The notes below the pieces were generated by a model that was not told the origin of the DNA, did not search any database, and saw nothing but the letters and a program-made list of their open reading frames with translations. DNA of 64,000 nucleotides, from NCBI RefSeq assembly GCF_006345805.1, contig NC_043010.1, positions 52,266,001-52,330,000 on the forward strand. The letters run 5' to 3'. Shown here piece by piece: positions 28,801-59,260 of this stretch (position 1 is the first letter of the stretch; each line of letters starts with the position of its first letter). The position numbers were made by a program, and so were the translations under genes. This stretch comes from Octopus sinensis. Lineage: Eukaryota.

Positions 28801-31800
28801 GAAGGTGAAGGTGAGGAATGCGAAGAAGGAATATTGAATATTCCAGAGGGGGGGATTTGAAGGTGAATGGGAGGAAGGGGAGGAAGGGGAGGAAGGAATA
28901 TTGAACATTCCAGAGAGGGGCATTTGAAGGTGAAGGGGAGGAAGGGAAGGAAGGAATATTGAACATTCCAGAGAGGAGGATTTGAAGGTGAAGGGGAGGA
29001 AGGGGAGGAAGGAATATTGAACATTCAAGAGGGGGGATTTGAAGATGAAGGGGAGGAAGGGTAGGAAGGAATACTGAACATTCCAGAGAAGGGGATTTTA
29101 ATTTGAAGGGGAGGAGGCGAGGAAGGAACATTGAACATTCCAGAGAGGGGGATTTTAAGGTGAAGGGGAGGAAGGGGAGAAAGGAATATTGAACATTCCA
29201 GAGAGGGGCATTTGAAGGTGAAGGGGAGGAAGTTGAGGAAGGAATATTGAACATTCCAGAGAGGGGATTTCAGGTGAAGGGGAGGAAGGGGAGGAAGGAA
29301 TATTGAACATTCCAGAGAGGGGCATTTGAAGGTGAAGGGGAGGAAGGGGAGGAAGGAATATTGAACATTCCAGAGGGGGGGATTTTAAGGTGAAGGGGAG
29401 GAAGGGGAAAAAGGAATATTGAACATTCCAGAGAGGGGCATTTGAAGGTGAAGGGGAGGAAGGGGAGGAAGGAATATTGAACATTCCAGAGAGGGGATTT
29501 AAGGTGAAGGAGAGGAAGGGGTGGAAGGAATATTGAACATTCCAGAGAGGAGGATTTGAAGGTGAAGTTGAGGAAAGGGAAGAAGGAATATTGAATATTC
29601 CAGAGGGGGGGATTTGAAGGTGAATGGGAGGAAGGGGAGGAAGGAAAATTGAACATTCCAGAGAGGGGCATTTGAAGGTGAAGGGGAGGAAGGGAAGGAA
29701 GGAATATTGAACATTCCAGAGAGGGGGATTTGAAGGTGAATGTAAGGAATGGTAAGAAGGAATATTGAACATTGCAGAGATGGGGATTTGAAGATGAAGG
29801 GGAGGAGGGGAGGAAGGAATATTGAACATTCCAGAGAGGGTGATTTGAAGATGAAGGGGAGGAAGGGGAGGAAGGGGATGAAGGAATATTGAACATTCCA
29901 GAGAGGAGGATTTGAAGGTGAAGGGAGGAAGGGGAGAAGGAATATTGAACTTTTCAGAGAGAGGAGGATTTCAAGGTGAAGGTAAGGAATGGGAAGAAGG
30001 AAGGAATATTGAACATTCCAGAGAAGGGGATTTTAATTTGAAGGGGAGGAGGCGAGGAAGGAACATTGAACATTCCAGAGAGGGGGATTTTAAGGTGAAG
30101 GAGAGGAATGGGAAGAAGGAATATTGAACATTCCAGAGAGGCCGATTTGAAGGTAAAGGAGAGGAATGGGATGAAGGAATATTGAACATTCCAGAGAGGG
30201 GGATTTGAAGGTGAAGGTAAGGAATGGGAAGAAGGAATATTGAACAATCCAGAGAGGGGGATTTGGAGGTGAAGGGGAGGAATGGGAAGAAGGAATATTC
30301 TACATTCCAGAGAGGCGGATTTGAAGGTAAAGGGGAGGAAGGGGACGAAGGAATATTAAACATTCCAGAGAGGGGGATTTGATGATAATGGGGAGTAAGG
30401 TGAGGAAGGAATATTGAACATTGCAGTGAGGGCGATTTGAAATGAAGGGGAGGAAGGGGAGGAAGGAATATTGAACATTCCAGAGAGGGGGATTTGAAGG
30501 TGAAGGGGAGGAAAAGGAGGAAGGAATATTGAACATTCCAGAGAGGGGGATTTGAAGATGAAGCGGAGGAAGGGGAAGAGGGAATATTGAACATTCCAGA
30601 GAGGAGTATTTGAAGGTGAAGGGGAGGAAGGGGAGGAAGGAATATTGAACATTCCAGAGAGGGGGATTTGAAGGTGAAGGGGAGGAAGGGTAGGAAAAGA
30701 GACTGAACATTCCAGAGAGCGGGATTTGAAGGTGAATTGGAGGTAGGGGAGGAATGTATATTGAACATTCCAGAGAGTGGGATTTTAAGGTGACGGGGAG
30801 GAAGGAATATTGAACATTCCAGAGAGGGGGATTTGAAGGTAAAGGAGAGGAATGGGAAAAAGGAATATTCAACATTCCATAGGGAAGATTTGAAGGTGAA
30901 GAGGAGGAATGGGTACAAGGAATATTGAACATTCCAGAGAGGGTGATTTCAAGGTAAAGGGGATGAATGGGAAGAAGGAATATTGAACTTTTCAGAGAGA
31001 GGAGGATTTCAAGGTGAAGGTAAGGAATGGGAAGAAGGAATATTGAACATTCCAGAGAGGGGGATTTGGAGGTGAAGGGGAGGAATGGGAGGAAGGAATA
31101 TTGAACATTCCAGAGAGGGAGATTTGAAGGTGAAGGGCAGGAATGGGAAGGAGGAATATTCAACATTCCAGAGAGGGGGATTTGAAGGTAAGCGGGATGA
31201 ATGGGAAGAAGCAATATTGAACATTCCAGACAGGGGGATTTGAAGGTGAAGGGGAGGAAGGGGAGGAAGGGAATATTGAACATTCCATAATAAATAAATA
31301 AAACCGGTTTGAATGTGAAGGGGAGGAATGGGAAGAAGGAATATTGAACATTCCAGACAGGGGGATTTTAAGGTAATGGGGAGGAAGGTGAGGAAGGAAT
31401 ATTGAACATTGCAGAGAGGGGGATTTGAAATGAAGGGGAGGAATGGGAAGAAGGCATATTCAACATTGCAGACAGGGGGATTTGAAGCTTAAAGGGATGA
31501 AGGTGAAGAAGGAATATTGAACATTACATAGAGGGGGATTTGAAGGTGAAGGGGAGGAAGGGGAGGATGGAATATTGAACATTCCAGAGAGGAGGATTTT
31601 AAGGTGAAGGGGAGGAATGGGAAAAAGGAATATTAAACATTCCAGGGAGGGGGATTTGAAGATAAAGGGAAGGAATGGGAAGAAGGAATATTGAACATTC
31701 CAGAGAGAGGGATTTGAAGGTAAAGGGAGGATTGGGTCTAAAGGAATATTGAACATTCCAGAGAGAGGGATTTGAAGGTAAATGTGACGAATGGGAAGAT

Positions 31801-33623
31801 GGAATATTGAACATTACATAGGGGGGATTTGAAGGTGAAGGGGAGGAATGGGAAGAAAGAATATTGAACATTCCAGAGAGGGAGATTTCAAGGTAAAGGA
31901 GAGGAATGGGAAGAAGGATTATTGAACATTCCAGAGAGGATGATTTAAAGGTAAAGGGGAGGAATGGGAAGAAGGAATATTGAACATTTCAGAGAGGGGG
32001 ATTTGAAGGTAAAGGGGAGGAATGGGAAGAAGGAATATTGAACATTCCGGGGGGAGGAGGATTTGAAGGTGAAGGGGAGGAATGGGAAGAAGGAATATTG
32101 AACATTACAGAGAAGGGGATTTGAAGGTAATTGGGTGGAATGGGAAGAAGGAATATTCAACATTCCACAAAGGGGAATTTAAGGGTAAAGGGGAGGAATG
32201 GGAAGAAGGAATATCGAACATTCCAGAGGGGGATTTGAAGGTGAAGGTAAGGAATGGGAAGAAGGAATATTGAACATTCCGGAGAGGGGGATTTGAAGGT
32301 AAAGGGGAAGAATGGGAACAAGGAATATTGAACATTCCAGAGAGGGGATTTGAAGGTAATGGGGAGGAAGGTGAGGAAGGAATATTGAACATTGCAGAGA
32401 TGGGGATTTCAAGATGAAGGGGAGGAGGGGAGGAAGGAATATTGAACATTCCAGAGAGGGGGATTTGAAGATGAAGGGGAGGAAGGGGATGAAGGAATAT
32501 TGAACATTCCAGAGAGGAGGATTTGAAGGTGAAGGGGAGGAAGGGGAGGAAGGAATATTGAACATTCAAGAGGGGGAATTTGAAGATGAAGGGGAGGAAG
32601 GTTATGAAGGAATATAGAACATTCCAGAGGAAGGGGATTTTAATTTGAAGGGGTGGAAGCGGATGAAGGAACATTGAACATTCCAGAGAGGGGATTTTAA
32701 GGTGAAGCGGAGGAATGGGAAGAAGGAATATTGAACATTCCAGAGTGGGGGATTTAAAGGTAAAGTGGAGGAATGGGATGAAGGAATATTGAACATTCCG
32801 GAGAGGGAGATTTGAAGGTGAAGGGGAGGAATGGGAAGAAGGAATATTGAACATTCCAGAGAGGGGGATTTGAAGGTGATGGGAGGAAGGGGAGGAAGGA
32901 ATATTGATTATTCCAGAGAGGGGGATTTGACGGTGAATGGGAGGAAAAGGAGGAAGGAATATTGAACATTCCAGAGAGGGGGATTTGAAGGTGAATTGGA
33001 GGTGGGAGGAATTTTTATTGAACATTCCAGAGAGTGGGATTTTAAAGTGAAGGGGAGGAAGGAATATTGAACATTCCAGAGAGGGGGATTTGAAGGTAAA
33101 GGGGAGGAACGGGAAGAAGGAATATTCAACATTCCATAGGGAGGATTTGAAGGTGAAGGGGAGGAATGGGAAGAAGGATTATTCAACATTCCAGAGAGGG
33201 AGATTTCAAGGTAAAGGTAAGAAATGGGAAGAAGGAATATTGAACATTCCAGAGAGGGGGATTTGAAGGTGAAGGGGAGGAATGGGAAGAAGGAATATTC
33301 AACATTCCAGAGAGGGAGATCTGAAGGTAAGCGGGATGAATGGGAAGAAGCAAATTTGAACATTCCAGACAGGGGGATTTGAAGGTGAAGGGGAGGAAGA
33401 TGAATGGGAGGAAGGTGAGGAAGGACTATTGAACATTCCATAATAAATAAATAAAACCGGTTTCAAGGTGAAGGGGAGGAATGGGTAGATGGATTATTGA
33501 ACATTCCAGAGAGGGAGATTTGGAGGTGAACGGGAGGAATGGGAAGAAGGAATATTGAACATTCCATAGAGGGGGATTTGAAGGTTAAGGGGAGGAATGG
33601 GAAGAAGGAATATTGAACATTCC
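7879..33623 (+). repeat. Satellite A: ~57-58-bp tandem array, roughly 450 monomers
   Basis: Consensus GGAATATTGAACATTCCAGAGAGGGGGATTTGAAGGT(G/A)AAGGGGAGGAA(GGGGAG/TGGGAA)GAA. Measured period 8293->8350 = 57. Uniform orientation throughout; the count is length divided by period. Confidence 0.97.
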
Positions 33624-33818
33624 AGTTCAAACCGGTTCAAACTGGTTCAAACCGGTTCAAACTGGTTCAAATCTATAAATAGTATCTATAAATAGAATCT
33701 ATAAATAGAATCTATAAATAGAATCTATAAATAGAATCTATAAATAGAATCTATAAATAGAATCTATAAATAGTACCTATAAATAGAATCTATAAATAGA
33801 ATCTATAAATAGAATCTA

Positions 33819-33854
<36 letters not shown>

Positions 33855-35080
33855 AGAATCTATAATTAGAATCTATAAATAGAATCTATAAAAAGAATCT
33901 ATAAATAGAATCTATAAATAGTATCTATAAATAGAATCTATAAATAGAATCTATAAATAAATAAATAAATAAATAAATAAATAGAATCTATAAATAGAAT
34001 CTATAAATAGAATCTATAAATAGAATCTATAAATAGTATCTATCAATGGAATCTATAAATAGAATCTATAAATAGAATCTATAAATAAATAAATAAATAA
34101 ATAGAATCTATAAATAGAATCTACAAATAGAATCTATAAATAGAATCTATAAATAGAATCTATAAATAGAATCTATAAAAAAATAAATAAATAAATAAAT
34201 AAATAGAATCTATAAATAGAGTCTGTAAATAGAATCTATAAAGAGAACCTATAAATAGTATCTACAAATAGAATCTATAAATAGAATCTATAAATAGTAT
34301 CTATAAATAGAATCTATATATAGAATCTATAAATAGTACCTATAAACAGAATCTATAAATAGAATCTATAAATAGAATCTATAAATAAATAAATAAATAA
34401 ATAAAAAATAAATAAATAAATAGAATCTATTATTCTATAAATAGAATCTATGAATAGAATCTATTTATGGACACTATTTATTTATTTATTTCTTTATTTA
34501 TTTATTTCAAACTGGTTCAAACCGGTTCATACCGTTCAAACCGGATCAAACCAGTTCAAACACTTTCATCAAACGTTTTTCATTAGACATTTTCATCAAA
34601 CATTTTTCATCGGACATATTCATCAGACATTTTCATCAAAAATTTTCATCAAACATTTTCATCAAACATTTTCATCAGACATTTTGATCCGGTTTGAACC
34701 GGTTTTATTCGATTTGTACCAGTTTCATCCGGTTTAAACCGTATCAAACCAATTCAAACTGGTTCAAGCCGGTTCAAACCGGATCAAACCAATTCGAACC
34801 GGTTCAAACCGGGTCAAACCAGTTCAAACCGGTTCAAACTGGTTCAAAACGATTCAAACTGGTTCAAATCTATAAATAGTATCTATAAATAGAATCTATA
34901 AATAGAATCTATAAATAGAATCTATAAATAGAATCTATAAATAGTATCTATAAATAGAATCTATATATAGAATCTATAAATAGTACCTATAAATAGAATC
35001 TATAAATAGAATCTATAAATACAATCTACACATAGAATCTATAAATAGAATCTATAAATAGAATCTATAAATAGAATCTA

Positions 35081-35111
<31 letters not shown>

Positions 35112-35983
35112 CTAGTATCTATAAATAGAGTCTGTAAATAGAATCTATAAATAGAATCTATAAATAGAATCTACAAATAGAATCTATAAATAGAATCTAT
35201 AAATAGTATCTATAAATAGAATCTATAAATAGAATCTATATATAGAATCTATAAATAAATAAATAAATGAATAAATAAATAAATAAATAAATAGAATCTA
35301 TAAATAGAATCTATAAATAGAATCTATTTATAGATACTATTTATTTATTTATTTATTTATTTATAGATTCTATTTATAGATTCTATAAATAGATTCTATT
35401 TATAGATTCTATAAATAGAATCTATGAATAGAATCTATTTATGGACACTATATATTTATTTATTTATTTATTTATTTATTTCAAACTGGTTCAAACCGGA
35501 TCAAACCAGTTCAAACACTTTCATCAAACGTTTTTCATTAGACATTTTCATCAAACATTTTTCATCAGACATATTCATCAGACATTTTCATCAAAAATTT
35601 TCATCAAACACTTTCATCAAACATTTTCATCAGACATTTTGATCCGGTTTGAACCGGTTTTATTCGATTTGTACCAGTTTGGTCCGGTTTAAACCGTATC
35701 AAACCAATTCAAACTGGTTCAAGCCGGTTCAAACCGGATCAAACCAATTCAAACCGGTTCAAACAGGGTCAAACCAGTTCAAACCGGTTCAAACTGGTTC
35801 AAAACGATTCAAACTGGTTCAAATCTATAAATAGTATCTATAAATAGAATCTATAAATAGAATCTATAAATGGAATCTATAAAAAGAATCTATAAATAGA
35901 ATCTATAAATAGAATGTATAAATAGAATCTATAAATAGTATCTATAAATAGAATCTATAAATAGAATCTATAAATAGAATCTA

Positions 35984-36014
<31 letters not shown>

Positions 36015-36299
36015 ATAGAATCTATAAATAGAATCCATAAAGAGAATCTATAAATAGAATCTATAAATAGAATCTATAAATAGAATCTATAAATTGAATC
36101 TATAAATAAATAAATAAATAAATAGTATCTATAAATAGAATCTATAAATAGAATCTATAAATAGAATCTAACAATAAATAAATAAATGAATAAATAAATA
36201 AATATATAAATAAATAAATAGAATCTATAAATGGAATCTATAAATAGAATCTATAAATAGAATCTATAAATAAATAAATAAATAAATAAATAGTATCTA

Positions 36300-36467
36300 G
36301 CAGGGGTGGCTGTGTGGTAAGTAGCTTGCTAACCCACCACATGGTTCCGGGTTCAGTCCCACTGCGTGGCATCTTGGGCAACTGTCTTCTGCTATAGCCC
36401 CGGGCCGACCAATGCCTTGTGAGTGGATTTGGTAGACGGAAACTGAAAGAATCCTGTCCTATATATG

Positions 36468-36498
<31 letters not shown>

Positions 36499-36721
36499 TT
36501 GTGTGTCTGTGTTTGTTCCCCTAGCATTGCTTGACAACCGATGCTGGTGTGTTTACGTCCCCGTCACTTAGCGGTTTGGCAAAAAGAGACCGATAGAATA
36601 AGTACTGGGCTTACAAAAAGAATGAGTCCCGGGGTCGAGTTGCTCGACTAAAAGGCGGTGCTCCAGCATGGCCGCAGTCAAAATGACTGAAACAAGTAAA
36701 AGAGTAAAGAGAGTAAAAGAG
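36300..36721 (+). mobile_element. Full-length SINE family 1 inserted in satellite B
   Basis: tatcta|gcaggggtggctgtgtggtaag...gagtaaaagag|taaatagaatc. Confidence 0.92.
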
Positions 36722-36865
36722 TAAATAGAATCAATAAATAGAATCTATAAATAGAACCTATAAATAGAATCTATAAATAGTCGCTATAAATAGAAGCTAT
36801 AAATAAAAGCTATAAAATAGAAGCTATAAATAGAAGCAACAAATAGAATCTATAAATAGAATCTA

Positions 36866-36908
<43 letters not shown>

Positions 36909-37093
36909 ATAGAATCTATAAATAGAATCTATAAATAGAATCTACAAATAGAATCTATAAATAGAATCTATAAATAGAATCTATAAATAGAATCTATAAT
37001 TAGAATCTATAAATAAATAAATAAATAAATAAATAAATATATAAATAGAACCTATAAATAGAGTCTGTAAATAGAATCTATAAATAGAATCTA

Positions 37094-37136
<43 letters not shown>

Positions 37137-39218
37137 ATAGAATCTATAAATAGAATCTATTTATAGATACTATTTATTTATTTATTTATTTATTTATGTA
37201 TAGATTCTATTTATAGATTCTATTTATAGATTCTATTTATAGATTCTATTTATAGATTCTATTTATAGATTCTATTTATAGATTCTGTTTATAGATTCTA
37301 TAAATAGAATCTATAAATAGAATCTATTTATAGATACTATTTATTTATTTATTTATTTATATATTTAGTTATCGATTCTATTTATAGATTCTATTTATAG
37401 ATACTATATATAGATTCTATTTATAGATTCTATTTATAGATTCTATTCATTTATTTATTTATTTATTCATTTATTTATAGATTCTATTATAGATTCTATT
37501 TATAGATTCTATTTATAGATACTATTTATAGATTCTATTTATAGATTCTATTTATAGATACTATATATAGATTTGAACCAGTTTGAACCGGTTTGAAATG
37601 GTTTGACCCGGTTTGAACTGGTTTGATCCGGCTTGAACCGGTTTGAATTGGGTAGATCCGGTTTGAACCAATTCAAAACGGTTCAAACTGGTTCAAACCA
37701 GTTCAAACCGGATCAAACCAGTTCAGACACTTTCATCAAACACTTTCATCAACCGTTTTTCATTGGACATTTTCATCAAAGATTTTTCATCAGACATATT
37801 CATCAGACATTTTCCTCAAAAATTTTCATTAAAACATTTTCATCAAACATTTTCATCAGACATTTTGATCCGGTTTGAACCGGGTTTATTCGATTTGTAC
37901 CGGTTTGGTCCGGGTTAAACCGTATGAAACCAATTCAAACCAGTTCAAACCGGTTCAAACTGGTTCAAATCTATAAATAGTATCTATAAATAGAATCTAT
38001 AAATAGAATCTATAAATAGAATCTATAAAAAGAATCTATAAATAGAATCTATAAATAGAATCTATAAATAGTATCTATAAATAGAATCTATAAATAGAAT
38101 CTATAATAGAATCAATAAATAAATAAATAATAAATAAATAAATAGAATCTATAAATAGAATCCATAATAGAATCTTAAAATAGAATCTATAATAGAATCT
38201 ATAAATAAAATAAATAAATAAATAGTATTTATAAATAGAATCTATAAATAGAATCTATAAATAGAATCTATAAATAGAATCTATAAATAGAATCTATAAA
38301 TAAATAAATAAATGAATAAATAAATAAATATATAAATAAATAAATTGAATCTATAAATGGAATCTATAAATAGAATCTATAAATAGTAGCTATAAATAGA
38401 AGCTATAAATAAAAGCTATAAAATAGAAGCTATAAATAGAAGCAATAAATAGAGACTATAAATAGAATCTATAAATAATTAAATAAATAAATAAATAAAT
38501 AAATAGAATCTATAAATAGAATCTATAAATAGAATCTATAAATAATATCTATAAATAGAATCTATAAATAGAATCTATAAATAGAATCTATAAATAAATA
38601 AATAAATAAATATATAAATAAATAAATAGAATCTATAAATAGAATCTATAAATTGAATCAATAAATAGAATCAATAAATAGAATCTATAATAAATGAATA
38701 AATGAATAAATAAATAAATATATAAATAAATAAATAGAATCTATAAATAGAATCTATAAATTGAATCTATAAATAGAATCTAAAATAAATAAATAAATGA
38801 ATAAATAAATAAAAATAAATAAATAAATAGAATCTAAAAATGGAATCTATAAATAGAATCTATAAATAGAATCTATATATAAATAAATAAATAAATAAAT
38901 AGTATCTATAAATAGAATCGATAAATAGAATCTATAAATAGAATCTATAAATAGAATCTATAAATAGAATCTATAAATAGTAGGTATAAATAGAAGCTAT
39001 AAATAAAAGCTATAAATAGAAGCTATAATAGAAGCAATAAATAGAATCTATAAATAGAATATATAAATAAATAAATAAATAAATAAATAAATAGAATCTA
39101 TAAATAGTATCTATAAATAGAATCTATAAAAAGAATCTATAAATAGAATCTATAATAGAATCTATAAATAGTATCTATAAATAGAATCTATAAATAGATC
39201 TATAAATAGAATCAATAA

Positions 39219-39249
<31 letters not shown>

Positions 39250-40036
39250 ATAGAATCTATAAATAGATCTATAAATAGAATCTTAAAATAGAGTCTATAA
39301 ATAGAATCTATAAATAAATAAATAAATAAATAGTATTTATAAATAGAATCTATAAATAAATAAATAAATGAATAAATAAATAAATATATAAATCAATAAA
39401 TAGAATCTATAAATAAAATCTATAAATAGTAGCTATAAATAGAAGCTATAAATAAAAGCTATAAAATAGAAGCTATAAATAGAAGCAATAAATAGAATCT
39501 ATAAATAGAATCTATAAATAATTAAATAAATAAATAAATAAATAAATAGAATCTATAAATAGAATCTATAAATAGAATCTATAAATAATATCTATAAATA
39601 GAATCTATAAATAGAATCTATAAATAAATAAATAAATAAATAAATAAATATATATATAAATAAATAAATAGAATCTATAAATAGTATCTATAAATAGAAT
39701 CTATAAATAGAATCTATAAATAGAATCTATAAATAAATAAATAAATAAATAAATAAATAGAATCTATAAATAGAATCCATAAAGAGAATCTATAAATAGA
39801 ATCTATAAATAGAATCTATAAATAGAATCTATAAATTGAATCTATAAATAAATAAATAAATAAATAGTATCTATAAATAGAATCTATAAATAGAATCTAT
39901 AAATAGAATCTAACAATAAATAAATAAATGAATAAATAAATAAATATAAAAATAAATAAATAGAATCTATAATGGAATCTATAAATAGAATCTATAAATA
40001 GAATCTATAAATAAATAAATAAATAAATAGTATCTA

Positions 40037-40453
40037 GCAGGGGTGGCTGTGTGGTAAGTAGCTTGCTAACCCACCACATGGTTCCGGGTTCATCCCACTG
40101 CGTGGCATCTTGGGCAACGTCTTCTGCTATAGCCCCGGGCCGACCAATGCCTTGTGAGTGGATTTGGTAGACGGAAACTGAAAGAAGCCTGTCCTATATA
40201 TGTATATATATATATATATGTGTGTTGTGTTTGTGTGTCTGTGTTTGTTCCCCTAGCATTGCTTGACAACCGATGCTGGTGTGTTTACGTCCCCGTCACT
40301 TAGCGGTTTGGCAAAAAGAGACCGATAGAATAAGTACTGGGCTTACAAAAAGAATGAGTCCCGGGGTCGAGTTGCTCGACTAAAAGGCGGTGCTCCAGCA
40401 TGGCCGCAGTCAAAATGACTGAAACAAGTAAAAGAGTAAAGAGAGTAAAAGAG
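40037..40453 (+). mobile_element. Duplicate of the 36300 SINE, same insertion junctions
   Basis: Identical flanks and diagnostic variants (caggggtgg, gctaacccaccac, ttacaaaaagaatgagt, agtcaaaatgac); 3737 bp downstream. Confidence 0.92.
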
Positions 40454-40741
40454 TAAATAGAATCTATAAATAGAATCTATAAATAGAACCTATAAATAGA
40501 ATCTATAAATAGTCGCTATAAATAGAAGCTATAAATAAAAGCTATAAATAGAAGCTATAAATAGAAGCAACAAATAGAATCTATAAATAGAATCTATAAT
40601 AAATAAATAAATAAATATAAATAAATAAATAAATAAATAAATAGAATCTATAAATAGAATCTATAAATAGAATCTACAAATAGAATCTATAAATAGAATC
40701 TATAAATAGAATCTATAAATAGAATCTATAATTAGAATCTA

Positions 40742-40772
<31 letters not shown>

Positions 40773-43340
40773 ATAGAATCTATAAATAGAATCTATAAAT
40801 AGAATCTATTTATAGATACTATTTATTTATTTATTTATTTATTTATTTATAGATTCTATTTATAGATTCTATTTATAGATTCTATTTATAGATTCTATTT
40901 ATAGATTCTATTTATAGATTCTGTTTATAGATTCTATAAATAGAATCTATAAATAGAATCTATTTATAGATACTATTTATTTATTTATTTATTTATATAT
41001 TTAGTTATCGATTCTATTTATAGATTCTATTTATAGATACTATATATAGATTCTATTTATAGATTCTATTTATAGATTCTATTCATTTATTTATTTATTT
41101 ATTCATTTATTTATAGATTTATTATAGATTCTATTTATAGATTCTATTTATAGATACTATTTATAGATTCTATTTATAGATTCTATTTATAGATACTATA
41201 TATAGATTTGAACCAGTTTGAACTGGTTTGAAATGGTTTGACCCGGTTTGAACTGGTTTGATCCGGTTTGAACCGGTTTGAATTGGGTAGATCCGGTTTG
41301 AACCAATTCAAAACGGTTCAAACTGGTTCAAACCAGTTCAAACCGGATCAAACCAGTTCAGACACTTTCATCAAACACTTTCATCAAACGTTTTTCATTG
41401 GACATTTTCATCAAAGATTTTTCATCAGACATATTCATCAGACATTTTCCTCAAAAATTTTCATTAAAACATTTTCATCAAACATTTTCATCAGACATTT
41501 TGATCCGGTTTGAACCGGTTTTATTCGATTTGTACCGGTTTGGTCCGGGTTAAACCGTATGAAACCAATTCAAACAGTTCAAACCGGTTCAAACTGGTTC
41601 AAATCTATAAATAGTATCTATAAATAGAATCTATAAATAGAATCTATAAATAGAATCTATAAAAAGAATCTATAAATAGAATCTATAAATAGAATCTATA
41701 AATAGAATCAATAAATAAATAAATAAATAAATAAATAAATAGAATCTATAAATAGAATCCATAAATAGAATCTTAAAATAGAATCTATAAATAGAATCTA
41801 TAAATAAATAAATAAATAAATAGTATTTATAAATAGAATCTATAAATAGAATCTATAAATAGAATCTATAAATAGAATCTATAAATAGAATCTATAAATA
41901 GAATCTATAAATAAATAAATAAATGAATAAATAAATAAATATATAAATAAATAAATATAATCTATAAATGGAATCTATAAATAGAATCTATAAATAGTAG
42001 CTATAAATAGAAGCTATAAATAAAAGCTATAAAATAGAAGCTATAAATAGAAGCAATAAATAGAGACTATAAATAGAATCTATAAATAATTAAATAAATA
42101 AATATAAATAAATAAATAGAATCTATAATATAATCTATAAATAGAATCTATAATAATATCTATAAATAGAATCTATAAATAGAAACTATAAATAGAATCT
42201 ATAAATAAATAAATAAAAAATAAATAAATATATAAATAATAAATAGAATCTATAAATAGAATCTATAAATGAATCAATAAATAGAATCAATAAATAGAAT
42301 CTATAAATAAATGAATAATATGAATAAATAATAAATATATATATAAATAAATAGAATCTATAAATAGAATCTATAATTGAATCTATAAATAGAATCTATA
42401 AATAAATAAATAAATGAATAAATAAATAAAAATATAAATAAATAAATAGAATCTAAAAATGGAATCTATAAATAGAATCTATAAATAGAATCTATAAATA
42501 AATAAATAAATAAATAAATAGTATCTATAAATAGAATCTATAAATAGAATCTATAAATAGAATCTATAAATAGAATCTATAAATAGAATCTATAAATGGA
42601 ATCTATAAATAGTAGGTATAAATAGAAGCTATAAATAAAAGCTATAAAATAGAAGCTATAAATAGAAGCAATAAATAGAATCTATAAATAGAATATATAA
42701 ATAAATAAATAAATAAATAAATAAATAGAATCTATAAATAGTATCTATAAATAGAATCTATAAAAAGAATCTATAAATAGAATCTATAAATAGAATCTAT
42801 AAATAGTATCTATAAATAGAATCTATAAATAGAATCTATAAATAGAATCAATAAATAAATAAATAAATAAATAAATAAATAGAATCTATAAATAGAATCC
42901 ATAAATAGAATCTTAAAATAGAATCTATAAATAGAATCTATAAATAAATAAATAAATAAATAGTATTTATAAATAGAATCTATAAATAAAATCTATAAAT
43001 AGAATCTATAAATAGAATCTATAAATAGAATCTATAATAGAATCTATAAATAAATAAATAAATGAATAAATAAATAAATATATAAATCAATAAATAGAAT
43101 CTATAAATAAAATCTATATATAGTAGCTATAAATAGAAGCTATAAATAAAAGCTATAAAATAGAAGCTATAAATAGAAGCAATAAATAGAATCTATAAAT
43201 AGAATCTATAAATAATTAAATAAATAAATAAATAAACAAATAGAATCTATACATAGAATCTATAAATAGAATCTATAAATAGAATCTATAAATAATATCT
43301 ATAAATAGAATCTATAAATAGAATCTATAAATAGAATCTA

Positions 43341-43375
<35 letters not shown>

Positions 43376-45416
43376 ATATATATATAAATAAATAAATAGA
43401 ATCTATAAATAGAATCTATAAATTGAATCAATAAATAGAATCAATAAATAGAATCTATAAATAAATGAATAAATGAATAAATAAATAAATATATAAATAA
43501 ATAAATAGAATCTATAAATAGAATCTATAAATTGAATCTATAAATAGAATCTATAAATAGAATCTATAAATAAATAAATAAATGAATAAATAAATAAAAA
43601 TATAAATAAATATATAGAATCTAAAAATGGAATCTATAAATAGATTATCGATTCTCTTTATAGATTCTATTTATAGATTCTATTTATAGATTCTATTTAT
43701 TTATTTATTTATTTATTTATATATAGATTCTATTTATAGATTCTATTTATTGATTCTATTTATAGACACTATTTATAGATTTGAACCAGTTTGAACCGGT
43801 TTGAACCAGTTTGAACCGGTTTGAACTGGTTTGAACCAGTTTGAACTGGTTTGATACGGTTTAAACGGGACCAAACTGGTACGAATCGAATAAAACCGGT
43901 TCAAACCGGATCAAAATGTGTAATGAAAAATTTTTGATGAAAGTGTTTGATGAAAGTATTTGAACTGGTTTGATCCGGTTTGAACCGGTTTGAACCGGTT
44001 TGAATCAGTTTGAACCGTTTTAAATTGGTTAGATCCTGTTTGAATCAATTCAAAACAGTTCAAACCGGTTCAAACAGGATCAAACCAGTTCAGACACTTT
44101 CATCAAACTCTTTCATCAAACGTTTTTCATTAGACATTTTCATCAAACATTTTTCATCGAACATTTTCATCAGACATTTTCATCAAAAATTTTCATCAAA
44201 CATTTTCATCAAACATTTTCATCAAACATTTTCATCAGACATTTTGATCCGGTTTGAACCGGTTTTATTCGACTTGTACCGGTTTGGTCCGGTTTAAACC
44301 GTATCAAATCAGTTCAAACTGGTTCAAACCGGCTCGAACCGGATGAAACCAGTTCAGACCGATTCAAACCGGGGCAAACCAGTTCAAACCAGTTCAAAGT
44401 GGTTCAAACCGGTTCAAACGGGTTCAAATCTATAAATAGTATCTATAAATAGAATCTATAAATAGAATCTATAAATAGAATCTATAAATAGAATCTATAA
44501 ATAGTATCTTTAAATAGAATCTATAAATAGAATCTATAAATAGAATCTATAAATAGAATCTATGAATAGAATCTAAAAATAGAATCTATAAATAAATAAA
44601 TAAATAAATAAATAAATAGTATCTATAAATAGAATCTATAAATAGAATCTATAAATAGAATCTATAAATAAATAAATAAATAAATAAATAAAAAAAAAAT
44701 AAATAATTAAATAGAATCTATAAATAGAATCTATAAATAGAATCTATAAAAAGAATCTATAAATAGAATCTATAAATAGAATCTATAAATAAAATCTATG
44801 AATAGAATCTATAAATAGAATCTATAAATAAAAAAATAAATAAATAGTATCTATAAATAGAATCTATAAATAGAATCTATAAATAGAATCTATAAATAGA
44901 ATCTATAAATAGTATCTATAAATAGAATCTATAAATAGAATCTATAAATAGAATCTATAAATAAATAAATAAATAAATAAATATTATCTATAAATAGAAT
45001 CTATGAATAGAATCTATAAATAGAATCTATAAATAAATAAATAAATAAATAAATATTATCTATAAATAGAATCTATGAATAGAATCTATAAATAGAATCT
45101 ATAAATAGAATCTATAAATAGAATCTATGAATAGAATCTATAAATAAATAAATAAATAAATAGTATCTATAAATAGAATCTATAAATAGAATCTATAAAT
45201 AGAATCTATAAATAAATAAAAAAATAAATAAATAATAAATAAATAATAGTATCTATAAATAGAATCTATAAATAGAATCTATAAATAGAATGTATAAATA
45301 ATATCTATAAATAGAATCTATAAATAGAAGCTATAAATAGAAGCTATAAATAGAAGCTATAAAGAGAAGCTATAAATAGATGCTTTAAATAGAAGCTATA
45401 AATAGAAGCTATAAAT

Positions 45417-45544
45417 ATTGAACATTCCATAGTGGGGGATTTAATGGTGAAGGGGAGGAATGGGTAGAAGGAATATTGAACATTCCAGACAGGGGTATTT
45501 CAAGGTAAAGGGGAGGAATGGGAAGAAGGAATATTGAACATTCC
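45417..45544 (+). repeat. Satellite A island (about 2 monomers) inside the composite array
   Basis: gctataaat|attgaacattccatagtggggg...gaacattcc|atagagttcagacctgatc. Confidence 0.9.
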
Positions 45545-46644
45545 ATAGAGTTCAGACCTGATCAAACCAGTACAAACCGGTTCAAACTGGTTCAAACTGT
45601 TCAAACCGGTTAAAACCGGAACAAACCAGTTCAAACACTTTCCTCAAACACTTTCATCAAACATTTTTCATCCGACATTTTCATCAAACATTAAACCGGT
45701 TCAAACCGGCTCAAACCAGATCAACCACATCAAACAAGTTCAAACTGGATCTAACCAATTCAAAACGGTTCAAACTGGTTCAAACCGATTCAAACCGGTT
45801 CAAACTGGATCAAACCAGTTCAAACACTTTCATCAAACACTTTCATCAAACGTTTTTCATCAGACATTTTCCTCAGACATTTTCATCAAAAATTTTAATC
45901 AAACATTTTCATCAAACATTTTCATCAAACATTTTCATCATACATTTTGATCCGGTTTGAACCGGTTTTATTCGATTTGTACCGGTTTGGTCCAGTTTAA
46001 ACCATATCAAACCAATTCAAACTGGTTCAAACCGGTTCGAACCGGTTCAAACCAGTTCAAACCGGTTCAAACCGCTTCAAACTGGTTCAAATCTATAAAT
46101 AGCATCTGTAAATAGAATCTATAAATAGAATCTATAAATAGAATCTATAAATAGTATCTATAAATAGAATCTATATATAGAATCTATAAATAATAAATAA
46201 ATAATAAATATTATCTATAAATAGAATCTATGAATAGAATCTATAAATAGAATCTATAAATAAATAAATAAATAAATAAATAATAGTATCTATAAATAGA
46301 ATCTATGAATAGAATCTATAAATAGAATCTATAAATAGAATCTATAAATAGAATCTATGAATAGAATCTATAAATAAATAAATAAATAAATAGTATCTAT
46401 AAATAGAATCTATAAATAGAATCTATAAATAGAATCTATAAATAAATAAAAAAATAAATAAATAAATAAATAAATAGAATCTATAAATAGAATCTATAAA
46501 TAGAATCTATAAATAGAATGTATAAATAATATCTATAAATAGAATCTATAAATAGAAGCTATAAATAGAAGCTATAAATAGAAGCTATAAAGAGAAGCTA
46601 TAAATAGATGCTTTAAATAGAAGCTATAAATAGAAGCTATAAAT

Positions 46645-46772
46645 ATTGAACATTCCATAGTGGGGGATTTAATGGTGAAGGGGAGGAATGGGTAGAAGGA
46701 ATATTGAACATTCCAGACAGGGGTATTTCAAGGTAAAGGGGAGGAATGGGAAGAAGGAATATTGAACATTCC
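46645..46772 (+). repeat. Satellite A island, duplicate of 45417 (1228-bp period)
   Basis: Identical sequence and junctions. Confidence 0.9.
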
Positions 46773-47413
46773 ATAGAGTTCAGACCTGATCAAACCAGTA
46801 CAAACCGGTTCAAACTGGTTCAAACTGTTCAAACCGGTTAAAACCGGAACAAACCAGTTCAAACACTTTCCTCAAACACTTTCATCAAACATTTTTCATC
46901 CGACATTTTCATCAAACATTAAACCGGTTCAAACCGGCTCAAACCAGATCAACCACATCAAACAAGTTCAAACTGGATCTAACCAATTCAAAACGGTTCA
47001 AACTGGTTCAAACCGATTCAAACCGGTTCAAACTGGATCAAACCAGTTCAAACACTTTCATCAAACACTTTCATCAAACGTTTTTCATCAGACATTTTCT
47101 CAGACATTTTCATCAAAAATTTTAATCAAACATTTTCATCAAACATTTTCATCAAACATTTTCATCATACATTTTGATCCGGTTTGAACCGGTTTTATTC
47201 GATTTGTACCGGTTTGGTCCAGTTTAAACCATATCAAACCAATTCAAACTGGTTCAAACCGGTTCGAACCGGTTCAAACCAGTTCAAACCGGTTCAAACC
47301 GCTTCAAACTGGTTCAAATCTATAAATAGCATCTGTAAATAGAATCTATAAATAGAATCTATAAATAGAATCTATAAATAGTATCTATAAATAGAATCTA
47401 TATATAGAATCTA

Positions 47414-47453
<40 letters not shown>

Positions 47454-48164
47454 ATCTATAAATAGAATCTATAATAGAATCTATGAATAGAATCTATAAA
47501 TAGAATCTATAAATAGAATCTATAAATAGAATCTATAAATAGAATCTATAAATAAATAAATAAATAAATAAATAGTATCTATAAATAGAATCAATAAATA
47601 GAATATATAAATAAATAAATAAATAAATAAATAGTATCTATAAACAGAATCTATAAATAGAATCTATAAATAGAATCTATAAATAGAATCTATAAATAGA
47701 ATCTATAAATAGAATCTATAAATAGTGTCTATAAATAGAATCTATAAATAGAATCTATAAATAAATAAATAAATAAATAAATAAAGAGTATCTATAAATA
47801 GAATCAATAAATAGAATCTATAAATAGAATCTATAAATAGAATCTATAAATAGTATCTATAAATAGAGTCTATAAATAGAATCTATATATAGAATCTATA
47901 AATAAATAAATAAATAAATAAATAGAATCTATAAATAGAATCTATAAATAGAATCTATAAATAAATAAATAAATAAATAAATAGAATCTATAAATAGGAT
48001 CTATAAATAGTAGCTATAAATAGAAGCTATAAACAGAAGCTATAAACAGAAGCTATAAATAGAAGCTATAAATAGAAGCTATAAAGAGAAGCTATAAATA
48101 GAAGCTATAAATAGAAGCTATAAATAGAAGCTATAAAGAGAAGCTATAAATAGAAGCTATAAAT

Positions 48165-48523
48165 ATTGAACATTCCAGAGAGGGGATTTGAAGGTAAAGT
48201 GGAGGAATTGGAAGAAGGAATATTGAACATTTCAGAGAGGGGGATTTGAAGGTGAAGGGGAGAAATGGGAAGAAGGAATATTCAACATTCCAGAGAGGGG
48301 GATTTCAAAGTGAAGAGGAGGAATGGGTAGATGGAATATTGAACATTCCAGAGAGGGGGATTTTAAGGTGAAGGGTAGGAATGGGAAGAAGGAATATTGA
48401 ACATTCCAGAAAGGGTGATTTGACGGTAAAGGGGAGGAATGGGAACAAGGAATATCTAACATTCCAGAGAGGGGTATTTGAAGGTAAAGGGTAGGAATGG
48501 GAAGAAGGAATATTGAACATTCC
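48165..48523 (+). repeat. Satellite A island (about 6 monomers) with the same entry and exit junctions
   Basis: gctataaat|attgaacattcc ... gaacattcc|atagagttcagacctgatc. Confidence 0.9.
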
Positions 48524-51012
48524 ATAGAGTTCAGACCTGATCAAACCAGTTCAAACCGGTTTAAACTGGTTCAAACTGTTCAAACCGGTTCAAACCGGAT
48601 CAAACCAGTTCAAACACTTTCATCAAACACTTTCATCAAACATTTTTCATCAGACATTTTCATCAGACATTTTCATCAAACATTAAACCGGTTCAAACCG
48701 GCTTAAACCGGATCAACCACATCAAACAAGTTCAAACCGGATCTAACCAATTCAAAACGGTTCAAACTCGTTCAAACTGGTTCAAACCGGATCAAACCAG
48801 TTCAAACACTTTCATCAAACATTTTTCATTAGACATTTTCATGAAACATTTTTCATCAGAAATTTTCATCAGACATTTTCATCAGACATTTTGATCCGGT
48901 TTTAACCTGTTTTATTCGATTTGTACCGGTTTGGTCCGGTTTGAACCGTATCAAACCAGTCCAAACTGGTACAAGCCGGATCAAACCGGATCAAACCAGT
49001 TCAAACCGGTTCAAACCGGGTCAAACCAGTTCAAACCGGTTCAAACTAGTTCAAACCGGTTCAAACAGGTTCAAACCGGTTCAAACCGGATCAAACCAGT
49101 TCAAACCAGTTCAAACACTTTCATCAAACATTTTCCCCAAACATTTTCATCAAACATTTTCATCAAACGTTTATCACCAAAAATTTATCAACAAACATTT
49201 TCATCAAACATTTTCATAAAACATTTTCATCAGACATTTTGATCCGGTTTGAACCTGTTTTATTCGATTTGTACCGGTTTGGTCCGGTTTGAACCGTATC
49301 AAACCAGTTCAAACTGGTTCAAACCGGTTCAAACCGGATCAAACCAGTTCAAACCGGTTCAAACTGGTTCAAGCCGGTTCAAACCAGATCAGATCCAGTT
49401 CAAAGTGGTTCAAACTGGTTCAAACTGGTTCAAAACGGTTCAAACTGGTTCAAACAAGATCAAACCAGATCAAACTAGTTCAAACACATTCATCAAACAC
49501 TTTCATCAAACATTTTTCATCAGACATTTTCATCAGACATTTTAATCAGACATTTTCATCAGTAATTTTCATCAGACATTTTCATCAAACATTTTCATGA
49601 AACATTTTCATCAGACATTTTGATACGGTTTGAACCGGTTTGAACCGCATCAAACAAGTTCAAACTGGTTCAAACCGGTTCAAACCGCATCAAACCAGTT
49701 CAAACCGGATCAAACCGGGTCAAACTAGTTCAAACCGGTTCAAATTAGTTCAAACAGGTTCAAACTGGATCAAACCAGATCAAACCAGTTCAAACACTTT
49801 CATCAAACACTTTCATCAAACATTTTTCATTAGACATTTTCATGAAACATTTTCGGCAAACATTTTTCATCAAACATTTTCATCAGACATTTTGATCCGG
49901 TTTGAACCGGTTTTATTCGATTTGTACCGGTTTGAACCAGTTTGAACTGGTTTGAATTGGTTTGACCAGGTTTGAACTTGTCTGATCTGGTTGATCCGGT
50001 TTGAGCCGGTTTGAACCGGTTTAATGTTTGATGAAAATATCTGATGAAAATGTCTGATGAAAAATGTTTGATGAATGTGTTTCATGAAAGTGTTTGAACT
50101 GGTTTTATCCGGTTTGAACCGGTTTGAACCAGTTTGAACCAGTTTGAACTGGTTTGATCTGGTCTGAACCGGTTTTAAACTGTTTGATCCGGTCTGAACT
50201 TGGTTTGAACCGGTTTAAAACGGTTTTTTATTCGGTTTGTACCGGTTTGGTCCGGTTTGAATCGGTTTGAACTGGACCGATCAAACATTTATCCTCATTT
50301 ATCATCAAACATTTATCATCAAACACTTTTCATTGTCATCAAACATTTATCATCAAAAGTTTTCATTAAACATTGTCACCAAACATTTTCATCAAACATT
50401 TTCATCAAACGTTTATCATCAAACATTTATCAACAAACATTTTCATATGACAATTATCATGAAACTTTATCATCACACATTTTCATGAAACATTTTTCAT
50501 CAAACATGTATATCAAACATTTTCATCAAACATTTACCTCAAACATTTATCAACAAACATTTTCATCAAACGTTTATCATCAAACATTTATCAACAAACA
50601 TTTTCATTAGACAATTATCATGAAACATTTATCTTCAAACATTTTCATCAAACATTTATCATCAAACATTTATCATCAAACATTTTCATAAAACATTTTT
50701 CATCAAACATTTTCATCAAACATTTTCATCAAACATTTACATCAAACATTTTCATCAATCATTTCATCAAACATTTTCATCAGACATTTTCATCAAACAA
50801 TTTTGAAAGTTTTGGTCAAACCGGTTTAAACCGGATCAAACCGGATCAAATTGGTTTGACCCTGTCTCGTTCGGTGCGGTTTGAACAGATTTGATCCGGT
50901 TTTAACCGGTTTGAAGCGGTTTGAACCAGTTTCAACCGGTTTGATGCGGTTTGAACTGGTTTGATCCGGTTTGAACCGGTTTTATCCGGTTTGAACTGGT
51001 TTGATTCGCATC

Positions 51013-51893
51013 GAACATTCCAGAGAGGGGGATTTGAGGAGTGAAGGGGAGGAAGGGGTGGAAGGTTTGTAGAACATTCCAGAAAGGGGGATTTGAGAGG
51101 TGGAGAGGAGAAATGGCGAGAAAGGAATATTGAACATTCCGGAGAGGGGGATTTGAGGTGTGAAGGGGAGGAAGGGGAGGAAGGAATGTTGAAAATTCCA
51201 GAGAGGGGGATTTGAGATGTGAAGGGCAGGAAGGGGGGAAAGGAATGTTGAACATTCCACAGAGGGGGATTTGAGGGGTGAAGGGGAGGAAGGAATGTTG
51301 AACATTCCTTAGAGGGGGAATTCAGGTGTGAAGTGAAGGAAGGAATATTGAATATTCCAGAGAGGGGGATTTTTGAGATGAAGGGGAGGAAGGGGAGGAG
51401 GGAATGTTGAACATTCCAGAGGGGGGATATGAGGGGTGAAGGAGAGGAAGGGGAGGAAGGAATATTGAACATTCCTGAGAGGGGGATTTTGAGAGGTAAA
51501 GGGGAGGAAGGGGAGGAAGGAATGTTGAACATTCCACAGAGAGGGATTTCAGGGGTGAAGGGGAGGAAGGGGAGGAAGGAATGTTGAACATTCCAGTGAG
51601 GGGATTTGAGGGGTGAAACGGAGGAAGGAATATTGAACATTCCAGAGAGGTGGATTTGAGAGGTGAAGAAGAGGAAGGGGAGGAAGGAATGTTGAACATT
51701 CCAGAGAGGGGGATTTGAGGGGTGAAGAGGAGAAACGGGAGGAAGGAATATTGAACATTCCAGAGAGGGGTTTTTGAGGGGTGAAGCGGTGGAAGGGGAG
51801 GAAGGAAAATAAAACATTCCAGAGAGGGGGATTTGAGAGGTGAAGGTGAGGAAGGAATATTGAACATTCCAGAGAGGGGGATTTGAGAGGTGA
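51013..51893 (+). repeat. Satellite A' subfamily island 1
   Basis: Frequent GGAATGTTGAACATTCC core and GATTTGAG(G/A)GGTGAA spacer, distinct from the main array. Confidence 0.9.
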
Positions 51894-52240
51894 AACATTT
51901 TCATCAAACGTTTATCATCAAACATTTATCAACAAACATTTTCATAAAACATTTTTCATTAAACACTTTCATCAAGCATTTTCATCAAACATTTTCATCA
52001 GACATTTTCATCAAACAATTTTGAATGTTTTGGTGAAACCGTTTTAGACCGGATCAAACCGGATCAAACTGGTTTCACCCTGTCTGGTTCGGTCCGGTTT
52101 CAACAGGTTTGATCCGGTTTGAAGCGGTTTGAACCGGTTTGAACCAGTTTGAACCGGTTTGAACCGGTTTGATGCGGTTTGAACTGGTTTGATCCGGTTT
52201 GAGCAAGTTTTATCCGGTTTGAACTGGTTTGAACCGCATC

Positions 52241-52915
52241 GAATATTCCAGAGGGGGTATTTCAGGGGTGAAGGAGAGGAAGGAATATTGAACATTCCAG
52301 AGAGGGGGATTTGAGAGATGAAGGGGAGGAAGGGGAGGAAGGAATTTTTAACATTCCAGAGAGGGGGATATGAGGGGGTGAAGGAGAGGAAGGGGAGGAA
52401 GGAATGTTGAACATTCCAGAGAGGTGGATTTGAAAGGTAAAGGGGAGGAAGGGGAGGAAGGAATGTTGAACATTCCAGAGAGGTGGATTTGAAAGGTAAA
52501 GGGGAGGAAGGGGAGGAAGGAATGTTGAACATTCCACAGAGGGGGATTTGAGGGGTGAAGGGGAGGAAGGGGCGGAAGGAATATTGAACATTCCAGAGAG
52601 GGGGATTTGGGAGATGAAGGGGAGGAACGGGAGGAAGGAATGTTGAACATTCCAGAGAGGGTGATATGAGGGGTGAAGGAGAGGAAGGGGAGGAAGGAAT
52701 ATTGAACATTCCAGAGAGGGGGATTTGAGAAATGAAGCGGAGGAAGGGGAGGAAGGAATGTTGAACATTCCACAGAGGGGGGTTTGATGGCTGAAGGGGA
52801 GGAAGGGGAGGATGTAATGTTGAACATTCCAGAGGGGGGATTTGAGGGGTGAACAGGAGGAAGGGGAGGAAGGAATGTTGAACATTCCAGAGAGGGGGAT
52901 TTGAGAGGGGGATTT
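52241..52915 (+). repeat. Satellite A' subfamily island 2
   Basis: Same diagnostic variants; the upstream D-C junction repeats at a 1218-bp offset (50798/52016). Confidence 0.9.
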
Positions 52916-53880
52916 TTTGAAAATGCTTGGTAAAAATTTTTGGTGAAACCGGTTCAAACCGGATCGAACCGGTTAAAACTGGTCAAAATTTTTTGGAAAA
53001 TATTTTGAAAATTTCAGTCAAGCCGGTTTGGTCAAATTTTGGCTGAAATATTGGTCAAACCAGTTCAAACCAGTTTGATACGGTTTGATCGAGTTTGAAC
53101 CGATTTGAACTGGTTTGATCCGCTTCGAACCGGTTTGAACTGGTTTGATCCGTTTTGAACCGGTTTGAACCGGTTTTATCCAGTTTCCACCTGTTTGGTC
53201 CGGTTTGATCTCGTTTGAACCTGACCGATCAAAACCTGACCGAACCAGACAGGGTCAAACCATTTTTATCCGGTTTAAACAACTTTGATCAAAACTTTCA
53301 AAAAATTTTGACCAAAAATTTTCATAAAATATTTGAAAATTTTTTACATATTCCGAAATTTGGTTTGATCCGGTTTGAACCGATTTGATCCGGTTTGGAC
53401 TGGTTTGATCCGTTTTGAACCGGTTAGATACGGTTTTAACTGGTTTGATCAGTTTTGAACCGGTTTGAACCGTTTTGAACCAGCTTGAACCGGTTTGATC
53501 TGGTTTGAACTGGTTTGATCCGGTTTGAACCGGTTTGATCCGGTTTGAACCGGTTTGATCCGGTTTGAACTGGTTTGATCCGTTTTGAACCGGCTTGAAC
53601 CAGTTTGAACCGATTTGATCCAGTTTGAACTGGTTTGATACGTTTTGAACCGGATTGATCCGATTTGAACTGGTTTGACCCGTTATGAACCGCTTTGAAC
53701 CGGTTTAAAACGGTTTGATCTGGTTTGAACTGGTTTGATCTGGGTTGAACCGGTTTAAGCCAGTTTGAACTTGTTTGGTCCGGTTTGGACCGGATCAAAC
53801 CAATTCAAGCCGGATCAAACCAGTTCAAACCGGATCAAACCGGTTCAAACTGGTTCAAACCGGATCAAACCAGATCAAAC

Positions 53881-58770: not shown

Positions 58771-58816
<46 letters not shown>

Positions 58817-59210: not shown

Positions 59211-59260
<50 letters not shown>

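Follow-up and report, generated by a model that had tools for sequence, protein, structure and literature searches.

The 10-mer satellite within its domain

We analyzed a 64,000-nucleotide stretch of the Octopus sinensis genome (NCBI RefSeq assembly GCF_006345805.1, contig NC_043010.1, positions 52,266,001 to 52,330,000 of the forward strand), hereafter called the window and numbered from its first letter. The window carries a non-coding satellite domain of ~50 kb, which is composed of a 58-mer array, a 20-kb mosaic at 33622-53889 and an array of a 13-mer (13-mer B, TCAAACATTTTCA). The mosaic holds the blocks of a 10-bp repeat, satellite C, which is the subject of this report, and interleaves them with two 13-mers, the 58-mer and two inserts that resemble short interspersed nuclear elements (SINE-like). 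According to our unit map, the 10-mer makes up ~20% of the mosaic (~4.15 kb), in 41 blocks of 3-52 units and 415 units in total. The summed intervals from Tandem Repeats Finder (TRF) assign the remaining mosaic to 13-mer A (AATCTATAAATAG, mixed with ATAA runs; ~50%), 13-mer B (~12%), the 58-mer (~11%) and the SINE-like inserts (~4%). An earlier reading of this DNA from its letters (the sequence-only reading) had placed satellite C at 33622-53880; these limits hold as an envelope and not as a continuous array.

The 10-mer consists of the 8-bp palindrome AACCGGTT followed by CA and is written here as CCGGTTCAAA-type units; forward and reverse units differ solely in CA versus TG. Both orientations are common (TTCAAA and TTTGAA) and often switch inside one block. 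The unit map uses a CCGG-first register, in which eight positions are scored and the two orientation-defining bases are left free. TRF reports a period of 10 in every block together with higher-order periods of 20, 30 and 40 bp, as in the alternation of TTTGAT and TTTGAA across 22 dimers at 53362-53793. The octamer AACCGGTT is present in 78 copies, where dinucleotide shuffles predict 0.40, and CCRGWTCAAACCRG in 88 copies against 0 expected. Counted in oriented units, the tetramers are CCGG (163), CCAG (67), CTGG (59) and CTAG (3), and the hexamers TTCAAA (222) and ATCAAA (72). The period and the unit counts bear out what the sequence-only reading had described, namely a 10-bp repeat of CCGG, CTGG or CCAG followed by TTCAAA or ATCAAA. 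The strings it had quoted are all present: CCAGTTCAAACCAG lies at 44379-44392, again at 49096 and 53060, and twice more on the minus strand (five copies on both strands in all), while CCGGTTCAAACCGG, said to be frequent, is found 12 times on the plus strand and 18 times as its reverse complement. Satellite C displays the features of a simple-sequence satellite, with a short unit repeated head-to-tail in non-coding arrays, higher-order variants, and a concerted spread of variants that is visible in the common variants of paralogous blocks.

Composite segments of the mosaic follow the order 58-mer, 10-mer, 13-mer B, 10-mer hinge and 13-mer A. They recur as direct duplications whose periods are 955 bp, 1228 bp and ~3.6-3.7 kb, the last of which carries the SINE-like insert along, and an inverted duplication relates 48578-48807 to 49900-50129 (230 nt, 92%). 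The paralogs were defined by anchor-based alignments, as self-BLAST of the region was swamped by the 13-mer arrays. In many blocks the switch from minus to plus units runs over a fixed hinge (…CCGGTTTGAACCGGTTTTATTCGATTTGTACCGGTTTGGTCCGGTTTAAACCGTATCAAACC…), which is identical in ten copies and recurs together with its flanks. Because many blocks are paralogous copies, the unit counts do not represent independent events. The near-identical 955-bp, 1228-bp and 3.7-kb duplications could be assembly artefacts, given the gap of 100 N at 7779-7878, directly before the 58-mer array.

The junctions between repeat families sit on common short cores, which are TCAAAC for 13-mer B, and CCAG and TTTGAA for the 58-mer. 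Rare hybrid 58-mer units at ~31290 and ~33440 contain ATAA runs and AACCGGTTTGAA; at 31290-31315 and 33440-33465, AGAGAGGGGGATTTGAAGG is swapped for TAATAAATAAATAAAACCGGTTTGAA, and the swapped patch corresponds to 13-mer A/ATAA sequence plus one reverse 10-mer unit. The hybrids show exchange between satellite families. With the common cores at the junctions, they make the families look like a locally evolving library and not like independent elements, and the junction cores point to a local derivation of the 10-mer from the neighboring satellites.

Since eight of its ten bases are self-complementary, the 10-mer folds back strongly as a single strand. Folding of one-orientation arrays gives -26.7 to -31 kcal/mol per 140 nt (z -7 to -8) and folding across the hinge -55 kcal/mol (z -12), compared with -1 for 13-mer B.

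Sources of variation among the units

CCGG is the hub of the variation: a single transition leads from it to CCAG or to CTGG, and two transitions separate these variants. Transitions reach 16.6% at C2 and 25.3% at G3, the two CpG positions, versus 4.3% at C1, 4.6% at C7 and 8.9% at G4. A plus-strand count of the dinucleotide between AAC and GTT, which is independent of the unit filter, gives CG 77, TG 54, CA 45 and TA 3, against 15.4 TA expected, and the TG and CA counts are symmetric between the strands. Pairs of paralogs were compared by classing CpG sites against all other sites; CpG transitions amount to 0.13 and 0.10 per site, versus 0.029 and 0.041 elsewhere. The excess at CpG positions fits methylation-dependent CpG decay. 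As with methylated CpGs decaying in other repeats, these positions have the highest transition frequencies in the array-wide counts, their changes are strand-symmetric and CCGG forms the hub. We also considered the depletion of the double mutant CTAG as a discriminator. The depletion is real but not decisive, because amplified lineages or a graded Grainyhead affinity would give the same result.

The commonest single variant is of another kind. T5>A (ATCAAA), found in 30% of the units, is a transversion unrelated to CpG, so that CpG deamination does not explain the whole spectrum. ATCAAA alternates with TTCAAA in the 20-bp higher-order unit and matches the ATCAAAC of 13-mer B; in the neighboring 58-mer, amplification alone lifts non-CpG variants to 27-41%. 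The variant spectrum is the product of CpG bias and variant amplification. The sequence-only reading had named CpG decay as an alternative source of the variants, and this alternative accounts for them better when variant amplification is joined to it; taken alone, it leaves ATCAAA unexplained.

Match to transcription factor sites and proposed origin of the array

Tetramers of the CP2/LSF family recognize CNRG-N5/6-CNRG, and Grhl dimers recognize AACCGGTT (PMC5829564; PMC9223585; PMC2908540). The sequence-only reading had assigned CNRG-N6-CNRG direct repeats to LSF/TFCP2 and had noted the resemblance of the repeat to a Grainyhead site; the published consensus sequences agree on both counts (PMC5829564). 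At the level of these consensus sequences, the match of the 10-mer to CP2 and Grainyhead sites is genuine, as (AACCGGTT-CA)n repeats both of them. A CP2/LSF element has at least two direct CNRG half-sites 5-6 nt apart; 310 of the 415 units conform to CNRG and form 201 adjacent pairs. The palindromic core of the Grainyhead site is present as AACCGGTT itself. The direct CNRG repeats have the 10-bp centre-to-centre distance of CP2/LSF (TFCP2, TFCP2L1, UBP1) elements, and runs of at least three consecutive half-sites recall the arrangement in the alpha-globin promoter. CP2c complexes favor at least two consecutive half-sites on one helix face (PMC9223585; PMC2908540). Natural CP2/LSF elements, however, have 2-4 half-sites in promoters or enhancers, whereas the satellite holds dozens. 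Grainyhead/GRHL sites, which share the perfect palindromic octamer with the 78 copies here, are single and lie in epithelial enhancers, whereas 30% of the 10-mer units lose one half of the palindrome through T5>A.

The motif comparison uses the published CNRG-N5/6-CNRG and AACCGGTT alone. The exact Tfcp2l1 14-mer and the HOMER consensus string were not found printed in the literature searched. We take the Tfcp2l1 14-mer, of which the window holds five exact occurrences, to agree with JASPAR MA0145.1 and HOMER.

One possible explanation is that selection maintains the array as a landing pad on which LSF/TFCP2-type tetramers and/or Grainyhead dimers settle, and that binding keeps the variants within CNRG. 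The exact repetition of the published consensus, with the 78 octamers and the 201 adjacent CNRG-N6-CNRG pairs, speaks for such a pad, as do the runs of three or more consecutive half-sites, the favored substrate of CP2c complexes (PMC9223585). Single-change tetramers stay within CNRG in 137 of 188 units, and the CTAG depletion could mirror the weaker affinity of Grhl1 for central TA steps (PMC5829564). However, the CNRG-N6-CNRG rule is satisfied by 39% of random 10-bp tandem repeats of uniform composition and by 25% of those with flank composition, and a 3-4-fold CpG transition bias predicts a surplus of within-CNRG variants. While 74.7% of the units are within CNRG, ~25% lie outside it. Intact half-sites are not clustered, with 201 adjacent pairs versus 203.1 +/- 4.3 in within-block shuffles, and CCAG-TTCAAA-CCAG occurs without excess (5 versus ~5.2 expected from unit frequencies). 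Nor does the orientation of the motif leave an excess of CCAG over CTGG (67 versus 59), and T5>A breaks the palindrome on one side in 30% of the units.

The conservation of the single positions also bears on such selection. It amounts to 89.2% at C1, 78.8% at C2, 71.3% at G3, 84.1% at G4, 68.9% at T5, 92.0% at T6, 88.4% at C7, 95.9% at A8, 98.1% at A9 and 95.2% at A10. In Grhl sites the initial C and second G of CCGG are the most conserved bases and critical for binding (PMC5829564); in the 10-mer they are not the most constrained. These contact bases, C1 and G4, hold no advantage in conservation over the spacer base C7 and are less conserved than the A-tract, and the pattern is unchanged after dropping nine recently duplicated blocks. 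The comparison of contact with spacer bases is conservative, because the unit filter scored C1 and G4 and not C7. Thus, the proposal of the sequence-only reading that the dominant variants remain within CNRG as expected under binding constraint does not survive, since the contact bases are unprotected, a quarter of the units fall outside the rule and the half-sites do not cluster; the argument is further undercut by the share of random repeats that satisfy the rule. A selected pad appears to us very unlikely. Were it true, the biology of satellites in a non-model animal would be tied to a conserved epithelial/pluripotency transcription factor family.

The best conserved positions are the A-tract (95-98%) and T6 (92%), and not CCGG. 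This would be expected if the 10-bp period were physical, with the alternation of CCGG and TTCAAA in each helical turn conferring anisotropic bendability or curvature and being kept for the rotational positioning of nucleosomes. The pattern of six weak and four strong bases (W6/S4) with a 10-bp phase is evident in the sequence, and such phasing, for example in TATAAACGCC repeats, gives high nucleosome affinity. Plain GC-to-AT mutation bias, however, also yields higher A/T conservation, and the neighboring 13-mers expand equally well without such a phase. We consider a physically maintained period very unlikely.

A further possibility is that Grainyhead or CP2 proteins bind the array opportunistically, as a sink or bundling platform, with no detectable purifying selection on the units. 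Such binding is biochemically plausible, although the sequence does not require it. Dozens of perfect consensus sites stand in tandem, and satellites of 5-10 bp offer precedents, with Prod binding AATAACATAG and GAGA factor binding AG-rich repeats (PMC6382350; PMC2132683). Simple-sequence satellites of 5-10 bp from animal heterochromatin are the closest analogues. One of them, the AATAACATAG satellite of Drosophila to which Prod binds (PMC6382350), resembles satellite C in its 10-bp head-to-tail unit, its higher-order variants and its position inside a larger multi-family satellite block, and in both the unit coincides with a sequence that a family of sequence-specific DNA-binding proteins recognizes. 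Unlike it, the octopus blocks are very short (3-52 units), interleaved with other repeats instead of forming long arrays, and in both orientations. Just ~4 kb of the 10-mer lie within the window, and methylation of the CpGs together with a heterochromatic state of the domain, if both apply, may limit access. On balance, opportunistic binding is unlikely. It is tempting to extend it to a satellite landing pad whose (AACCGGTT-CA)n blocks would be occupied by a Grainyhead/CP2-family protein, for example to bundle heterochromatin or to sequester factors, the satellite being at the same time a rare methylated island among intergenic DNA that is otherwise unmethylated; this fuller version strikes us as improbable. 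Were there occupancy, the array would be a cephalopod counterpart of the Drosophila Prod and GAGA-factor satellites that involves a deeply conserved developmental transcription factor family.

Together, our results suggest, with a probability of roughly 0.7, that satellite C, one of the four repeat families interleaved here, is a simple satellite of the ordinary kind with a unit that happens to form a perfect Grainyhead/CP2 site. We propose that the 10-mer propagates without need of a protein partner. Short blocks would grow through slippage and unequal exchange, as the 20-, 30- and 40-bp periods indicate, and would be copied passively when kb-scale composite segments duplicate in direct or inverted orientation. 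Strand fold-back may favor slippage and template switching, which would lead to the frequent switches from minus to plus orientation. CCAG and CTGG are the two strand-symmetric CpG transition products of CCGG, with methylation-dependent deamination as the probable cause, and ATCAAA would have spread through amplification of the 20-bp dimer. The identity with the Grainyhead/CP2 consensus would then follow from the unit sequence, selection not visibly maintaining it, and we infer that a binding function is absent.

Several points weigh against the ordinary-satellite explanation. The full AACCGGTT octamer is expected in ~0.015% of random 10-mers, a rarity that would make the match non-trivial for a single pre-specified factor. 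Where an array turns over fast, the lack of extra conservation speaks only weakly against binding, because homogenization can mask selection and array binding needs only a fraction of intact sites. The CpG excess is not significant when polarized in the six independent lineages of the P family, where the counts are small (CpG 3/14 versus other C/G 3/34 and A/T 10/80; p = 0.34), and array-wide CpG counts overstate the events, as units share ancestry. Two amplified lineages, CCAG and CTGG, would lead to the CTAG depletion as well. Moreover, the observed/expected ratio of CpG in the non-repetitive flanks is 1.03 (1-7300) and 0.91 (58301-64000), and without depletion there, methylation would have to be satellite-specific. 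The comparison with other CpGs of the locus, which the sequence-only reading had recommended, has two sides: CpG transitions are raised in the array, while the flanks are undepleted and the independent lineages give 3/14 versus 3/34. The array departs from the decay of methylated CpGs in repeats in that its excess is just ~2-5-fold, non-significant in independent lineages and accompanied by undepleted flanks. The methylome of Octopus bimaculoides has methylation at <10% of CpGs, with low levels in transposable elements and relatively more in satellites (PMC9476566); the lack of depletion in the flanks is compatible with it.

The case shows how easily a short tandem repeat imitates the site of a dimeric transcription factor. 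In any 10-bp repeat that contains CNRG, the half-sites are of necessity spaced by one helical turn, and variants that arise through CpG transitions automatically remain inside the degenerate consensus. Two observations are of modest interest. The CpG-transition signature appears despite undepleted flanks, which fits the report of unusually methylated octopus satellites, and the near-palindromic unit has a strong fold-back that could plausibly drive the flips in orientation.

Scanned for the exact pattern, metagenome contigs yielded 60 with (AACCRGTTCA)3, none of them homologous to the octopus locus. In most of these, which are marine and phage-like, one triplet or quadruplet occupies an intergenic spacer, and a few have short eukaryote-like arrays. 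Thus, unrelated genomes repeatedly give rise to the same 10-mer. Exact (AACCAGTTCA)3-4 repeats lie in intergenic spacers of ~50 marine contigs (among L001-L060; for example, L006 2209-2236, L009 4787-4814 and L007 6595-6622), which form several families with conserved flanks such as ...CATGGTTTAAGTCCTC...AAGTATACCA-(repeat)-GTGACGCCC...AAATACTGTCATCATT. The open reading frames (ORFs) beside them mostly have no Pfam match, which suggests uncultured marine phages, and one encodes a 2OG-Fe(II) oxygenase. The marine repeats may be an operator or iteron and are unrelated to the octopus array.

Map of the blocks and neighboring sequences

The blocks and their context are listed in Table 1. A literature search on described octopus satellites or centromeres turned up nothing relevant, and the window has no genes, tRNAs or Rfam families, its flanks being free of credible ORFs.

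Table 1 Positions of the 10-mer blocks and of neighboring repeats in the window
Feature	Positions	Strand	Remarks
58-mer satellite (context)	7881-33625	+	~439 copies, 25.7 kb, G-rich
10-mer block, 5 units, CCAG/CCGG/CTGG in alternation	33622-33671	+	meets 58-mer at common CCAG
10-mer block, 3 units	34531-34560	+	
10-mer block, 18 units, P-family paralog	34689-34868	.	minus-orientation hinge (TCGATTTGTACC), then + units
10-mer block, 3 units	35486-35515	+	recent duplicate of 34531
10-mer block with hinge	35644-35823	.	recent duplicate (955-bp period) of 34689-34868
SINE-like element, 430 bp, inside 13-mer A array	36300-36728	+	
10-mer block, 9 minus then 6 plus units	37578-37727	.	single-strand hairpin, -55 kcal/mol
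10-mer block, 10 units, P-family hinge	37870-37969	.	
13-mer A array (AATCTATAAATAG + ATAA runs), example of array after each 10-mer block (context)	37968-40029	+	
10-mer block, 15 units	41213-41362	.	duplicate of 37578-37727, in ~3.6-3.7 kb segmental duplication
10-mer block, 10 units	41505-41603	.	duplicate of 37870-37969
10-mer block, 13 units, minus then plus	43786-43915	.	
10-mer block, 13 units, minus then plus	43965-44094	.	
10-mer block, 18 units, P-family	44249-44428	.	contains CCAGTTCAAACCAG at 44379-44392
10-mer blocks, 4+4 units, family R	45557-45635	+	
10-mer block, ~13 units, family S	45696-45824	+	
10-mer block, 14 units, P-family hinge then + units	45952-46091	.	
10-mer blocks	46785-46863	+	duplicate (1228-bp period) of 45557-45635
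10-mer block	46924-47052	+	duplicate of 45696-45824
10-mer block	47179-47318	.	duplicate of 45952-46091
10-mer blocks, 4+4 units	48536-48614	+	older family R paralog
10-mer blocks, 3+8 units	48688-48806	+	older family S paralog; arm of 230-nt inverted repeat with 49900-50129
10-mer block, 22 units	48896-49115	.	P-family hinge, then 17 + units
10-mer blocks, 14+9 units	49244-49484	.	P-family hinge, then + units
10-mer block, 17 units (2 minus, 15 plus)	49625-49794	.	
10-mer blocks, 8+3 units, minus orientation	49897-50025	-	P hinge truncated
10-mer blocks, 10+4 units, minus orientation	50099-50271	-	
10-mer blocks, 3 plus then 13 minus units, family T	50821-51005	.	
10-mer blocks, 4 then 15 minus units	52039-52243	.	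paralog of 50821-51005
10-mer block, 4 units	52949-52988	+	
10-mer blocks, 16+3 units, mainly minus orientation	53060-53279	-	
Longest 10-mer block: 42 minus units (20-bp TTTGAT/TTTGAA alternation), then 10 plus	53370-53889	.	
13-mer B array (TCAAACATTTTCA), 27-bp higher order (context)	53885-58280	+	4.4 kb; TCAAAC core common with 10-mer; adjoins 10-mer in frame

The 58-mer array has 85% matches, a GC skew of ~+0.75, nearly no CpG and sub-family variants at 27-41%; the long ORFs that span it are repeat artefacts. 13-mer B also has a divergent form with a 13/14-bp unit (CATTTATCATCAAA) and a 27-bp higher order, which is confined to 50296-50799.

The 430-bp SINE-like element has an internal TA/TG microsatellite and a AGTAAAAG-repeat tail. 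It has a near-identical second copy at ~40033-40460; a relative in the flank, at 6613-7040, differs at ~6% of the columns, several of the differences being CpG versus TpG/CpA. Since the two near-identical copies lie inside 13-mer A, 3732 bp apart, the insertion is older than the ~3.7-kb segmental duplication. A second SINE-like family at 7100-7700, presumably an abundant octopus repeat, comprises a 185-bp unit in 1.9 copies (7335-7690) and a related copy at ~7140-7330; ARAGORN and Rfam gave no match to this family. The non-satellite flanks (1-7300 and 58301-64000) are dense in TA, CA, ACAT, ATAC, ACAG and GA-rich microsatellites.

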